Of a DNA stretch of 58,358 nt, positions 1,856-8,712 are shown one piece after another (within the stretch, counting starts at the first letter, position 1; each line of letters begins with the position of its first letter). Origin of the DNA: Leidyana gryllorum EB-2025a. Lineage: Eukaryota; Protista; Apicomplexa. The stretch is from the NCBI GenBank assembly GCA_048772705.1, contig JBLWGC010000007.1, positions 1 to 58,358 on the forward strand, written 5' to 3'. Position numbers and translations under genes: made by a program. Under the pieces are notes generated by a model. That model was given only the letters and a program-made list of their open reading frames with translations. It did no database searches and was not told the DNA's origin.

Positions 1856-2876
1856 TTTTCCGACTTTGTAGCACAGACATGGATCGCCGTACACGCGGCC
1901 GATACCATACGCCAGTATTCGCGTTCCTTGCAACAGGCCACCAGATCATAATTGTTACAGTAATTACCATCAGTCAATACTTTCCGATTAGCAAAGCCGT
2001 ATCCACGGCAACAGTTGGATAAGTTGTATAGCGTGTAGCCGTTGGTTAGTCGGGGTCACATTATGTTTCTCTCTTGCTTTCCCTCTCGAGCCCGCTTATG
2101 AGGTCCCCACGTTGAAAGACCCGCTGTTATTCCAAATATTGATCGGACACCACTGCTCTCGACTCGCCGGCCCCGCTCTGCTCCCATATCAGTACCTTCC
2201 AGACTGTGACCGGCACGAGTACCTCCGAATACTCTCGTTATATGGACACTGAACGCTTCCATCTGTCTCTAAACTGCTCGGAAGTGGCGTTCCGACAGCC
2301 GGAGATACAACATAGCTTTCAACGCTGAGAACTTGACATCCCAAGGGCCCTTGAACACTTACGCAACAATCCAACGTCCGGCGAAGATATTGCAGCCGGC
2401 TGTCGATGTGTGACGTTCAACCCAATCGACTACCACCCCTGAGATTGACAGTGAGACAGAGACTGGAGGCACTCATTACAACACCCCTTTTCGGTAAGTA
2501 AATGGTTACAGTCCCGCCAGCCGCAGTCTGTGGATCGTTGGAATCATTTGAGCGACTTTGCCGTCTGCGGGAGAACGAGAATTCGAACAGACGAGCCCGG
2601 CCGTACGCAGTCCCGGGCGTTGGTTTTCCTGTGAGGTTTTCCTCACACGTATCCGAATGTTCAGATAGAGATTCATACAAAAACACAATGCCTACCGGCA
2701 ACATCGTGTACATCACAAACAAGCGTCCTCGCCAAAGGTCGGACCTCATTGAGTGTCCACCTCCGTCTTGGACACTGCTAACCACGACTGTGTGGTCCTC
2801 TATTGAGAATGCGAGGACCCAACTAGTGCCCACCAAAAGGCATTCTTCAAGAACTCGCGGTGGTGAGCAAAGCTCT

Positions 2877-3050
2877 TCACCTCCTTAGGGAGGTGAGTGG
2901 CTTTCACTCGCTTCGTGCTGAGAGATACGGCGACTGCGGTGGAACTTTTTAGTTCCATTGCGGTCGTTGTGTCAAGCGGGGAGAGTATTCATTAGCCGAT
3001 AGTTAGGACGTCATTTTGATGTCAGTCTGCCCCAAACAGACTGCTTTTCC
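2877..3050 (+). ncRNA. Putative structured RNA core, copy 1
   Basis: TCACCTCC-TTAG-GGAGGTGA hairpin; 23-bp stem 2924-2946/2951-2973 with 6 G-U pairs; enclosing stem 2900-2913/2974-2986; GACGTCA/TGATGTC hairpin; CAGTCTG-7nt-CAGACTG hairpin then a T-tract. Confidence 0.5.
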
Positions 3051-4007
3051 TTTGTGCTTAATTACGAACCAATGTGTATATCTCCGATTATTCAAAAGCC
3101 TCCGTAACCCCTCCGCATCACTTCATCCGGTAATACTTTGCCAAGTAACAGCGGCGTCTCCGTGATAACCCTCCGCGCGATCAATCAGAATACTTTTGGA
3201 TCGGGAATCTCGATGGTCTCTTGACCTCCTCGAAAATTCCGAACGCTTTTTGGCCACTTTTGCGCAAAGCCATTGTTACTGTCTCCGTCTGATCGGGTCA
3301 CTCGCCACTTAGCCTTTGAGAGATGGACAGAACACTCAGTGCAACTCGATGAGACAGAGGCGGTGGCGTAAAGTCATTGAGAGACGGTGGTTAACGGACA
3401 GATCAGTGGCATTGGGGTTTAAAACGGAGTCTCGTTCGATAGCCGGAGACACGATTGATAGACTGACGACGGTGAGACTCCGAAAGGGGCCACCATTCGT
3501 TTGTTGGAAAGAGACGTTATAACGAGTGCTTCCAGTCTGTCTCACTCTCAATTTAAGCGATGGCGGTCGCTTGGGCCGGGCCGCACGTCAACCGGCTGCA
3601 CTATCTTTACCAAAGTTCGATCTTTGCGGGACTGTCCGAAACTGCTGACGGCCCGCAGTCTGTGGACCGTTGGAACCACTCCAACGACTATGAAATTACG
3701 GATTAATGAGATGGGGAAAACGCGTGCGACCGTAAGAGGCCACCCGCTGGATTTCCGTGAGGCTTTCCCCCACACGTGTTCGGTGTTCGTGCATCGATAC
3801 ACATCAAAAAGCATGCAGTTAGGAAACGTCGTGTTCATACGCAATCGCGGAATCCGTCCACGGGGCAGTTCGGATCCTTTTCAAAGTCCGCCTCCGTCTT
3901 GGACCCTTCTGACCACGACTGTGTGGTCCTCCATTGAGAATGCGAGGACCGAACTTCTGACCACCAAAAGGCATTCTTCAAGAACTCGCAGTGGTGAGCA
4001 AAGCTCT

Positions 4008-4181
4008 TCACCTCCTTAGGGAGGTGAGTGGCTTTCACTCGCTTCGTGCTGAGAGATACGGCGACTGCGGTGGAACTTTTTAGTTCCATTGCGGTCGTTG
4101 TGTCAAGCGGGGAGAGTATTCATTAGCCGATAGTTAGGACGTCATTTTGATGTCAGTCTGCTACCACCAGACTGCTTTTCC
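4008..4181 (+). ncRNA. Putative structured RNA core, copy 2
   Basis: Same stems as copy 1; terminal loop CTACCAC. Confidence 0.5.
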
Positions 4182-5250
4182 TTTGTGCTTAATTACGAAC
4201 CAATGCGTATTTCTCCTATTATTCAAAAGCCTCCGTAACTCCTCCGCATCACTTCATCCGGTAATACTTTGCCAAGTAATAGCGGCGTCTCCGTGATAAC
4301 CCTCCGCGCGATCGATCTGAATACTTTTGGATCGGGAATCTCGATGGTCTCTTGACCTCCTCGAAAATTCCGAACGTTTTTTGGCCACTTTTGCGCAAAG
4401 CCATTGTTACTGTCTCCGTCTGATCGGGTCACTCGCCACTTAGCCTTTGAGAGATGGACAGACAGCGTAGTTAGTGCAACTCGATGAGACAGAGGGGAGC
4501 GGGGCAACATGGAGGGCAGATGATTGTCTGTCATACACTGAATCCAACTCTGCCGACAGAAACTTGAACTGTCCAATGAGTCAAGAAGCTTTCCGCCACT
4601 TCATTGGCGTTGACACAGCCGCCAAAGGTGGTATCCCCGTTATCCCCTCCGCCCTTTGAACCCATGTTTGGGATTGCTGCGGAACCAGAACGTGCGAGAA
4701 CCCAACTTCCTTTCCCTTCCCATTGCTTTCAGATCTCGCCGAAGCTGAGGCTTCTGCACTCTGAAGAGATCTCGGCGACGGTGTCTTCGTGCACTCTCTA
4801 TTCTTCGGAAGTCCAACGGTGTTTCAACCGTTGTTGGGACTCATCGGAGTTTCAATAGCTCTCAGATCGATTGCCACACGGCAAGCGGAGTGATGGTACA
4901 ACGAATGATCACTCTTCCCGCGAGCCACGGCTCGTGGATCATTAGATACATCGATTGACTCCGGACTTTGTCCAACGCAACATGGAACGAGGGAATCGCT
5001 GGTTTTCCCGTGAGGTTTTCCCCACAAGTGACCTTTATCGAATTGAATAGATACGAAAACTAGAATGCGCGGTACAGTCGTGTTCATACCAAACACAAAG
5101 AAACTAAAAGTTTCTAACATCATTGAGTGTCCGTGTCCAACGTGGACACTGCTAACCACGACTGTGTGGTCCTCCATGGAGAATGCGAGGACCCAACCTT
5201 TTGCCACCAAAAGGCATTCTTCAGGAACTCGCGGTGGTGAGCAAAATTAC

Positions 5251-5423
5251 TCACCTCCTTAGGGAGGTGAGTGGCTTTCACTCGCTTCGTGCTGAGAGAT
5301 ACGGCGACTGCGGTGGACTTTTTAGTTCCATTGCGGTCGTTGTGTCAAGCGGGCAGAGTATTCATTAGTCCATAGTTAGGACGTCATTTTGATGTCAGTC
5401 TGCCCCAAACAGACTGCTTTTGC
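5251..5423 (+). ncRNA. Putative structured RNA core, copy 3
   Basis: Same stems; first hairpin extended to ACTCACCTCC/GGAGGTGAGT; 1-nt deletion near the apical loop; terminal loop CCCCAAA. Confidence 0.5.
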
Positions 5424-5656
5424 TTTGTGCTTAATTACGAACCAATGTGTATATCTCCTATTATTCAAAAGCCTCCGTAATCCCGCATCACTTCATCCGG
5501 TAATACTTTGCCAAGTAATAGCGGCGTCTCCGTGATACCCTCCGCGCGATCGATCTGAATACTTTTGGATCGGGAATCTCGATGGTCGCTCGACCTCCTC
5601 GAAAATTCCGAACGTTTTTTGGCCACTTTTGCGCCAAGGCATTGTTACTGTCTCCG

Positions 5657-5980
5657 TGATTAGTGAAAAGGGTGTGCGTAGCCCTAGCTAGGTGTGACCC
5701 TTAGGGTTAAACTACTGCTTTGGAAGAATTTTTGTTTTTGAACTGCATGCTATGATATGATCTAGTTAGTGTTCCGGCCGGGCTAACACGGAGACACCGG
5801 GTCGACAAACACGCACGTGTGCTTCGCACGGATTAAACTTACTTCTTAGATTGAACTGCAGGATGGCCAGAGATGGACTAGGAGCAAGGCAGGTACCGAT
5901 CCAGAGGATGATCAAAGCCCTTCTGTCGACCTCCCAGCAGATCCGGCCGACAATCAACCGGTACAACTAATACCGGTTCA
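5657..5980. mobile_element. Solo LTR (324 bp) with 5-bp target-site duplication CTCCG
   Basis: Begins TG(A), ends (T)CA; CTCCG at 5652-5656 and 5981-5985; the empty site tgtctccgtctgatcggg is present at the 3281 and 4412 junctions. Confidence 0.85.
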
Positions 5981-6663
5981 CTCCGTCTGATCGGGTCAGT
6001 CGCCACTAAGCCTTCGAGAGACCGACAGAACACTCAGTGCAGCTCGATGAGACAGAGGCGGTGCCGTAGAATCATTGAGAGACGGTGGTTAACGGACAGA
6101 TCAGTGGCATTGGGGTTCAAAACGGAGTCTCGTCCGATAGCCGGAGACACGATTGATAGACTGACGACGGTGAGATAACGAGTGCTTCCACTCTGTCTCG
6201 CTCTCAATTTAAGAGATGGCGGTCGCTTGGGCCGGGCCGCACGTCAACCGGCTGCACTATCTTTACCAAAGTTCGATCTTTGCGGGACTGTCCGAAACTG
6301 CTGACGGCCCGCAGTCTGTGGACCGTTGGAACCACTCCAACGACTATGAAATTACGGATTAATGAGATGGGGAAAACGCGTGCGACCGTAAGAGGCCACC
6401 CGCTGGATTTCCGTGAGGCTTTCCCCCACACGTGTTCGGTGTTCGTGCATCGATACACATCAAAAAGCATGCAGTTAGGAAACGTCGTGTTCATACGCAA
6501 TCGCGGAATCCGTCCACCGGGCAGTTCGGATCCTTTTCAAAGTCCGCCTCCGTCTTGGACCCTTCTGACCACGACTGTGTGGTCCTCCATTGAGAATGCG
6601 AGGACCGAACTTCTGACCACCAAAAGGTATGCATCAAGAACTCGCGGTGGTGAGCAAAGCTCT

Positions 6664-6837
6664 TCGCCTCCTTAGGGACGTGAGTGGCTTTCACTCGCTT
6701 CGTGCTGAGAGATACGGCGACTGCGGTGGAACTTTTTAGTTCCATTGCGGTCGTTGTGTCAAGCGGGGAGAGTATTCATTAGTCCATAGTTAGGACGTCA
6801 TTTTGATGTCAGTCTGCGCCAATCAGACTGCTTTTGC
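6664..6837 (+). ncRNA. Putative structured RNA core, copy 4
   Basis: Same stems; terminal loop CGCCAAT. Confidence 0.5.
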
Positions 6838-7806
6838 TTTGTGCTTAATTACGAACCAATGTGTATATCTCCTATTATTCAAAAGCCTCCGTAACCCCTC
6901 CGCATCACTTCATCCGGTAATACTTTGCCAAGTAATAGCGGCGTCTCCGTGATAACCCTCCGCACGATCAATCAGAATACTTTTGGATCGGGAATCTCGA
7001 TGGTCTCTTGACCTCCTCGAAAATTCCGAACGTTTTTTGGCCACTTTCGCGCAAAGGCATTGTTACTGTCGCCGTCTGATCGGGTCAGTCGCCACTTAGC
7101 CTTCCAGAGATGAACAGAACAGTCAGTGCAGCTCGATGAGACAGATGCAGGCGTAGAGTCATTGAGAGACGGTAATTCATAGACACTTAAGAGGATTGGG
7201 GTCCAACACGGAGTCTCGTCCGATACGCGGACACACGAAAGAGCGATGGACGTACAACGGTGACACTCTCAATCTGAAGAGGCCTCAGACACGCAGAAAT
7301 CCCAATTCCAGCGGAGATATCGCAGTCGGCTGTCAGATATTCACGTGCGGCCGATGCGACTGCCCTCCCTTAATTAACAGTGAGACAAAGACTGGAAGCA
7401 GTCATTACAAAGTCTCTTTTCGGTGATTAAATGGTTACAATTCCCGCCAGCCGCAGTCTGTGGATCGTTGGAATCATTTGAGCGACTTTGCCGTCTGCGG
7501 GAGAACGAGAATTCGAACAGACGAGCCCGGCCGTACGCAGTCCCGGGCGTTGGTTTTCCTGTGAGGTTTTCCTCACACGTATCCGAATGTTCAGATAGAG
7601 ATTCATACAAAAACACAATGCCTACCGGCAACATCGTGTACATCACAAACAAGCGTCCTCGTCAAAGGTCGGACCTCATTGAAGGTCCACCTCCGTCTTG
7701 GACACTGCTAACCACGACTGTGTGGTCCTCTATTGAGAATGCGAGGACCCAACTAGTGCCCACCAAAAGGCATTCTTCAAGAACTCGCGGTGGTGAGCAA
7801 AGCTCT

Positions 7807-7980
7807 TCGCCTCCTTAGGGAGGTGAGTGGCTTTCACTCGCTTCGTGCTGAGAGATACGGCGACTGCGGTGGAACTTTTTAGTTCCATTGCGGTCGTTGT
7901 GTCAAGCGGGGAGAGTATTCATTAGCCCATAGTTAGGACGCCATTTTAATGACAGTCTGCCACAACCAGACTGCTTTTCC
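7807..7980 (+). ncRNA. Putative structured RNA core, copy 5
   Basis: Same main stems (A>G change in the first hairpin keeps a G-U pair); terminal loop CCACAAC. Confidence 0.5.
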
Positions 7981-8712
7981 TTTGTGCTTAATTACGAACC
8001 AATGTGTATATCTCCGATTATTCAAAAGCCTCCGTAACCCCTTCGCATCACTTCATCCGGTAATACTTTGCCAAGTAATAGCGGCGTCTCCGTGATAACC
8101 CTCCGCGCGATCAATCAGAATACTTTTGGATCGGGAATCTCGATGGTCTCTTGACCTCCTCGAAAATTCCGAACGTTTTTTGGCCACTTTTGCGCAAAGC
8201 CATTGTTATTGTCTCCGATGCTCAGTGGCTGTTGACATCTTCAACAATTACCGAGCACGGTGCCCCGCTTTGCCACGCTATGCGCTTTCGTTATCAGCCC
8301 TGCGTCATGACGGCGTTTGAATTTAGCAGAAATCACACCCAACGGGTAGAAGTGTAGTGGCAACAATGCCATCTCAGCCGCAGCAGTCAGATCAACGTAT
8401 TGAGAAAATGGACCATAGACGGACGGTCACATCGGGTAAGAACGTTTACCGTTGGCGACGTTTATGGTTTCTGGAGTACTCTCGTCGTGCACTTTGCCTC
8501 ACGTAGTAAAGGATAAGGGTAGCAGAGCTGTATGATGGCTCGCTTCGGTATCACGGTGAAGCGTACGGGGAGACGAGTTGACGTTCGTCACCGCGGTGGC
8601 AAGAGTGTGCTGCGGGACGCAAGTTCCCTGAGTCCACGTCGTAGCAGGTTTGGGAGTGCACATGCGTGTAGATTTTGGGCAGTGCGTGGGGATTTTTTGA
8701 GGTTGAGTGCTT

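Follow-up and report, generated by a model that had tools for sequence, protein, structure and literature searches.

A tandem array of putative small spliced genes, probably shaped by gene conversion, in the gregarine Leidyana gryllorum

The vls system of Borrelia and the pilS system of Neisseria are silent-cassette systems of antigenic variation, with mosaic copies that arise by gene conversion, and TRIM and LARD tandem arrays consist of non-autonomous long terminal repeat (LTR) elements. Partly homogenised tandem arrays are also well described in parasitic protists, for example in trypanosomatids (PMC4413820). Here we describe an array of five units in Leidyana gryllorum EB-2025a, at positions 2290-8217 (+ strand) of the window, by which we mean the whole 58,358-nt stretch of DNA analysed (contig JBLWGC010000007.1, here C7, of the 15.5-Mb genome assembly). 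The units follow one another in the order A-B-C-[LTR]-B-A and probably represent a five-copy tandem family of small spliced genes, predicted to encode an orphan protein of ~75 residues and shaped by gene conversion.

The array is most likely a further case of a known kind, a tandem gene family under gene conversion, with an orphan as its product. In common with the trypanosomatid arrays (PMC4413820), it consists of head-to-tail paralogues that are partly homogenised by conversion, retains differentiated copies and diverges at its ends. It differs from them in its product, a ~75-aa orphan whose genes are predicted to contain introns, and in the position of the homogenised tract, which covers the intron and 3' flank, whereas the coding 5' third is type-specific.

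Array geometry and predicted genes

The units are delimited by a junction motif that ends at 3287, 4418, 5656, 7074 and 8217, giving junction-to-junction lengths of 1131, 1238, 1089 and 1143 bp for units 2 to 5. The original prediction of a near-identical ~530-bp block in all five copies is confirmed: the conserved blocks begin near 2755, 3886, 5129, 6542 and 7685, are 527-532 bp long and share 91.7-97.9% pairwise identity. The variable blocks between them had been described as three diverged but homologous types. Identity of 46-64% between types agrees with this, but type C has no demonstrable homology to A or B over its initial ~400 nt (z 0.2 and -0.6). Non-adjacent units form the closest pairs, as had been noticed; the variable blocks of units 2 and 4 are 90% identical overall and those of units 1 and 5 73%, and over the final 240 nt these values rise to 99.6% and 98.8%. 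The sharp mosaic breakpoint reported between units 1 and 5 is equally real, the two being clearly diverged upstream of 2513/7443 and 98.2% identical over the following 773 nt (14 substitutions, 0 gaps).

A search of the whole genome for more units, as the original prediction had advised, was made at the DNA, covariance-model and protein-profile levels. It recovered two further full blocks, both on contig C202, and a fragment on contig C43; the family occupies only three loci. The C202 blocks lie in a 14-kb palindrome (305036-318999) and are most likely one locus mirrored by a fold-back artefact of assembly, because the left arm is rich in gaps (165 gap openings) and its transporter open reading frame (ORF) is broken. 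Besides a type A unit (cA), this locus carries a diverged partial copy on its upstream side and, downstream, a very diverged paralogue, type D. The C43 fragment (3600-4960 of the stretch examined) is a deletion-riddled copy of the C202 locus with 72-81% identity, which takes in the 3' end of an ABC transporter gene and the type A upstream block. Outside this genome no homologues were found, and searches of phage, plasmid, viral and metagenome sequences gave chance matches only. One of three phmmer matches with several repeated stretches was examined and proved to be an unrelated bacterial repeat ORF. An exact look-up returned no protein of the window, not even the controls, and carries no information.

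An ATG on the + strand, in an A-rich context, is aligned in all six good copies (2688, 3813, 5065, 6469 and 7618 in the array, and in cA). From it a frame of 65-68 codons runs without stops out of the variable and into the constant block, so that the border between the two sits within the reading frame. Over exon 1 the ATG frame is the single stop-free one of the six, and the between-type indels within it measure 6 and 3 nt. When non-coding units of similar divergence were simulated, 0.1% (0.001) had a common ATG followed by at least 58 open codons in all three types. Types A and B differ in exon 1 by a pS of 0.38 and a pN of 0.17 (dN/dS 0.36, Fisher p 0.005), and differences between near-identical copies are mainly silent (3 synonymous and 0 non-synonymous between unit 1 and cA). 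Exon 1 is under codon-level constraint. Between the diverged types the frame is kept at a dN/dS of less than 1, significantly so for A against B and at the borderline for C, as would befit a tandem gene family. This constraint does not extend to the unit as a whole; a coding reading of entire units was rejected, as there is no global codon signal and 3 of 13 indels are in frame, and coding appears confined to small exons.

In unit 1, coding exon 1 (2688-2862, + strand; ATG plus 58 codons) is followed by a predicted 90-nt intron (2863-2952), which runs from a GTGAGC donor to a pyrimidine-rich TAG acceptor and contains a hairpin at 2868-2904. Its removal would preserve the frame and take out two stops, and the 1-nt deletion of unit 3 lies within it. 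Predicted coding exon 2 (2953-3002) comprises 50 nt and ends in TAG. The predicted 3' untranslated region (UTR) or flank (3003-3287) contains a 7-bp stem and variable 7-nt loop (3023-3043), with a T-rich run after them. Left unspliced, the frame of unit 1 stops at TAG 2886-2888 after 66 aa, and splicing from another donor, at 2893, would likewise yield the 66-codon product. The same model on the + strand predicts an intron at 3994-4083 and exon 2 at 4084-4133 for unit 2 (type B, ATG 3813), at 5237-5325 (89 nt) and 5326-5375 for unit 3 (type C, ATG 5065), at 6650-6739 and 6740-6789 for unit 4 (type B, ATG 6469), and at 7793-7882 and 7883-7932 for unit 5 (type A, ATG 7618). The predicted products measure ~73-76 aa with the 90-nt intron removed and 65-68 aa with it retained.

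The three anchors that the original prediction found shared among the variable blocks are all present, and we reread them as splice sites and conserved codons. Anchor 1 (2521-2526, + strand; ending also at 3658, 6314 and 7456, with a variant at 4924) resembles an acceptor and would open a 5' UTR exon. Anchor 2 (GTGAGG, 2631-2636, + strand; also 3757, 5010, 6413 and 7561) resembles a donor and would begin a 5' UTR intron. No frame is common to A and B in the predicted exon between them. Anchor 3 corresponds to codons 6-9 of the ATG frame. We infer transcription of the units, their splice sites and the UTR exons from sequence.

Candidate host introns, taken from the epimerase gene of the window and from ORF junctions, have the form GTRAG...YAG and are mostly 37-100 nt long. 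The predicted splice signals of the units fit these introns and are kept in the distant paralogue D, where GT, AG, the 90-nt spacing and TAG occur at matching places. The intron and exon 2 are homologous to D: the best ungapped match of the constant block to D is exactly 2863-3002, with a score of 24.8 against a maximum of 21.6 in 200 shuffles. Six of the 15 exon 2 residues and the stop are identical, five of them through synonymous codons, and the intron has no protein-level similarity. The comparison with D lends the predicted exon structure moderate support.

Several observations weigh against the gene family. The protein-level match of exon 2 to D reaches p~0.03 in one C202 arm and is absent in the error-rich arm, exon 1 of D has no significant match, and D can also be aligned collinearly in a rival way, with z~3.5. 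For type C the exon 1 ratios are borderline (A against C, dN/dS 0.61, p 0.09; B against C, 0.55, p 0.05), the reading frame tested was chosen after inspection, and all diverged blocks pooled give no codon signal (84 against 85). Searches that took the exons separately found no domain or homologue for any of them, and a structure model of the exon 1 frame is disordered, of low confidence (pTM 0.13) and uninformative. Finally, the gene model does not require the 23-bp stem that lies over the acceptor (see below).

The product would be an orphan protein, predicted to be unstructured, basic and rich in Ser, Thr and Pro. Judged from the alignment, the paralogues would carry type-specific N-termini of ~27 residues on a common C-terminal part. 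Three further coding features were rejected. A candidate final exon (3169-3312; p 0.009) was one of many windows tested, crosses the tandem junction and has a stop in two copies. At 3019 a frame of 48 codons stays open in five copies, but the C202 copy has a frameshift in it and there is no silent-site excess. Stop readthrough was suggested by the bases 3' of TAG 2888, which resemble the gammaretroviral signal, but another stop follows after 10 codons, and unit 4 alters the motif.

Homogenisation and history of the array

As far as codon 27 the types share 45-60% identity; the figure is ~90% for codons 28-58 and 93-100% for the intron, exon 2 and 3' flank, with a gradual increase within exon 1. 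The intron and 3' flank are homogenised as strongly as the coding part. Because selection at the protein level cannot yield an intron with 94-100% identity, the constant block must have been homogenised. Beyond the donor, mutual incompatibility affects 15 of 36 pairs of informative sites and the copies fall into seven distinct groupings, which argues for repeated short conversion tracts; in exon 1, 19 of 300 pairs are incompatible. Such a patchwork of incompatible variants shared between copies is in keeping with a tandem gene family. Since the homogenisation is both patchy and extends across the intron and 3' flank, gene conversion is indicated, and the earlier view that simple tandem duplication is insufficient and that copies have exchanged sequence is upheld. 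Constancy of the block is thus limited to copies that are still exchanging, identity in this part being ~65% for the partial edge copy on C202 and ~47% for type D.

The history of the locus may be pictured as follows. Old duplications would have given rise to types A, B, C and D, and later unequal exchange to the A-B-C-B-A order and the second locus on C202. The apparently constant block would then be the work of repeated gene conversion, whose tracts had their centre in the 3' half and faded within exon 1. Some tracts, between units 1 and 5 and between units 2 and 4, may have reached further 5', either as longer tracts or by unequal crossovers. The solo LTR, incidental to the array, would stem from a gypsy-type element that entered one of the junctions.

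Upstream of the genes the units differ in further ways. Unit 1 lacks ~100 nt of 5' sequence present in the remaining units, and a ~150-nt segment (2351-2506) is inverted in type B (3492-3639), with ~72% identity; no inverted repeats were seen at its ends. A sixth copy at 1895-2150 (z 1.0) and an internal copy within type C (z 2.1) are unsupported, neither giving a profile match.

RNA structure, mobile elements and silent cassettes

The constant block folds with a z of -5.4 on the + strand and -2.5 on the - strand, with local values down to -8.9, and the + strand signal comes mainly from two stems. One of them is an invariant 23-bp stem (2924-2973, + strand), in which the end of the intron pairs with exon 2 and the acceptor AG sits at the edge of the loop. 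It contains 17 Watson-Crick and six G-U pairs and no A-C pairs, which favours the + strand as the one transcribed. The units may be structure-controlled micro-protein genes, in which the stem hides the 3' splice site or is cut into small RNA for Argonautes; we regard this as unlikely. A role of the stem in splicing regulation or as a small-RNA source is possible. Under splice gating, a retained intron or splicing from the second donor could give 65-68 aa, and opening of the stem 73-76 aa with another C-terminus. Conversion could then spread a regulatory module across paralogues with differing N-termini. The intron of D also folds strongly (z -3.9), but by a different stem, and the 23-bp stem is absent from it. 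A search of the genome revealed no near-perfect target of either stem arm elsewhere. The variable 7-nt loop after the predicted stop is borderline as a 'barcode' (p~0.06).

The same folding signal could denote an uncatalogued structured non-coding RNA or hairpin small-RNA precursor of ~250-550 nt, repeated in tandem with diverged spacers, the frame being incidental or a leader peptide. In several stems variation lies in the loops, and the genome holds multi-copy U1, U3 and signal recognition particle (SRP) RNA genes, the first two partly in tandem, as well as Piwi-domain genes. Like the U1 and U3 arrays, this locus repeats a conserved structured block in tandem; unlike them, it matches no Rfam family and shows no covariation among its closely similar copies, its spacers are deeply diverged, and a constrained frame crosses the block border. 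None of the 168 predicted pairs shows a two-sided change, the copies being 92-98% identical. Neither Rfam, at the gathering threshold and at E<10, nor ARAGORN recognised an RNA family in the array, the single match at E<10 being a chance one outside it. The spacers of the U3 array are 81-100% identical, and the codon constraint would be left unexplained by an RNA gene. With the stem missing from D and near-perfect targets of its arms not found elsewhere in the genome, we consider such an RNA rather improbable. Nor does the scaffold-plus-payload RNA array of the original prediction survive, as there is no payload of defined length with recombination-site borders, besides the lack of an Rfam family and of two-sided changes.

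Specific RNA identities were also considered. Covariance models of known non-coding RNAs have no match in the units, and place U1, U3, SRP, RNase P/MRP and rRNA elsewhere. For telomerase RNA no template was found, the best unit match being 6-7 nt for TTTAGGG/TTAGGG, a host telomere repeat not being established; three TTTAGGG in a row occur at only one site of the assembly, which is internal (C12:6955). The assembly either lacks canonical telomeres or has telomeres of another type. C/D or H/ACA guides gave only chance matches of 11-12 nt to the partial host rDNA contig, and an origin from an rDNA spacer found no support. In that contig (C157; 5930-8950 of the stretch examined) only the 3' part of the small-subunit (SSU) rRNA gene was found; the ~2.9 kb upstream of it are not rRNA, have a ~330-bp inverted repeat at their borders and may be a mobile element. 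Matches to small RNA genes number 42 for U1, 24 for U3 (only ~150 nt each) and 10 for SRP, counts that may be inflated given the fold-back chimera on C202. Tandem arrays lie on C216, C182 and C126, and SRP genes adjoin U1 genes. The RNase P and RNase MRP RNA genes stand in direct tandem, 58 bp apart (C43 425950-426581). Two Piwi-domain genes are clear and one is weak (C121 41751-42719 and 208175-209125; C43 450907-452273).

Between units 3 and 4 lies a 324-bp solo LTR (5657-5980, + strand). Its termini are TG...CA, and it is flanked by the 5-bp target duplication CTCCG (5652-5656 and 5981-5985). Five further near-full copies with 86-94% identity are dispersed in the genome, and the insert is an ordinary Ty3/gypsy solo LTR without any difference from its kind. 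It sits exactly at the tandem junction (5652-5657), which corresponds to the end of unit 5 (8213-8217), and the C202 units are immediately preceded by a related LTR-like sequence.

LTR elements abound in the genome, which has over 100 integrase matches, and the array shares with TRIM and LARD arrays the alternation of conserved and variable blocks, structured RNA and this LTR-rich setting. Read directly, however, the units have no TG...CA termini, primer site or purine tract, there is no target duplication around the array, and loci number only three. An LTR remnant or TRIM array was rejected on these grounds and for want of Pol homology; an integrase or Pol origin, suggested by short motifs, found no match among 24 Pol fragments of this genome. 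The same points bear on a decayed, unexpressed gene family or relic of a mobile-element gene, with a coding signal that is historical and similarity that stems from recent duplication or conversion. Broken relatives exist (the partial copy on C202 and the C43 fragment) and the protein is an orphan. Yet all six good copies retain ATG, frame, donor, acceptor and stop, and their recent differences are mostly silent; we judge a relic distinctly improbable.

The original prediction also likened the array to a silent-cassette library, in which variable 5' modules would be copied into an expressed site and switch the N-terminus of one protein. Mosaic copies, constant and variable parts, and gene conversion are indeed shared with the silent variant surface glycoprotein (VSG) cassettes of Trypanosoma (PMC4413820), and type-specific N-termini on a common C-terminus, the breakpoint at 2513 and the separate type A unit on C202 would suit such a system. 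Unlike VSG cassettes, the units have no separate expression site, no large archive and no evident surface-protein features, and each has its own start codon and intact frame, making it a complete gene model rather than a promoterless or truncated donor. The genome-wide searches revealed no distinct full-length expression locus with incomplete donors, and the intact, fuller expressed copy for which the original prediction suggested looking was not found, only same-sized copies and decayed fragments. The C202 copy itself lies within a small array, there are only three or four types, and dedicated flanking repeats are lacking. Pfam searches of 30 window ORFs bear out the earlier statement that the window encodes no recombinase, nuclease or reverse transcriptase. 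Silent cassettes are accordingly very improbable. An assembly artefact is hardly credible: the C202 fold-back with its error-rich arm shows that the assembly does contain chimeras, but the C7 units differ by clean substitutions (14 mismatches and no gaps between units 1 and 5), fall into three types and include an LTR with an exact target duplication.

Genomic setting and implications

The array is flanked by a haemagglutinin-repeat gene on the - strand (ATG 1756) and a major facilitator superfamily (MFS) transporter gene on the + strand. The former, a 448-aa ORF at 410-1756, adjoins the array, matches the Pfam family Fil_haemagg (E 1.4e-5), a haemagglutinin repeat of bacterial type, and has a likely 5' UTR intron at 1803; horizontal transfer is possible. 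The UDP-glucose epimerase encoded in the window has its nearest relatives in Protomagalhaensia wolfi and Gregarina sp. Poly1 (70-71%), and this affinity identifies the host as a gregarine apicomplexan.

The array gives no pointer to a novel diversification machine. If the tandem gene family is the right reading, it would add an orphan micro-protein family, below common ORF-length cut-offs, to a poorly annotated group of parasites. It would also provide a clean natural case of conversion tracts that end inside an exon and so leave paralogues with variable N-termini and a common C-terminus.

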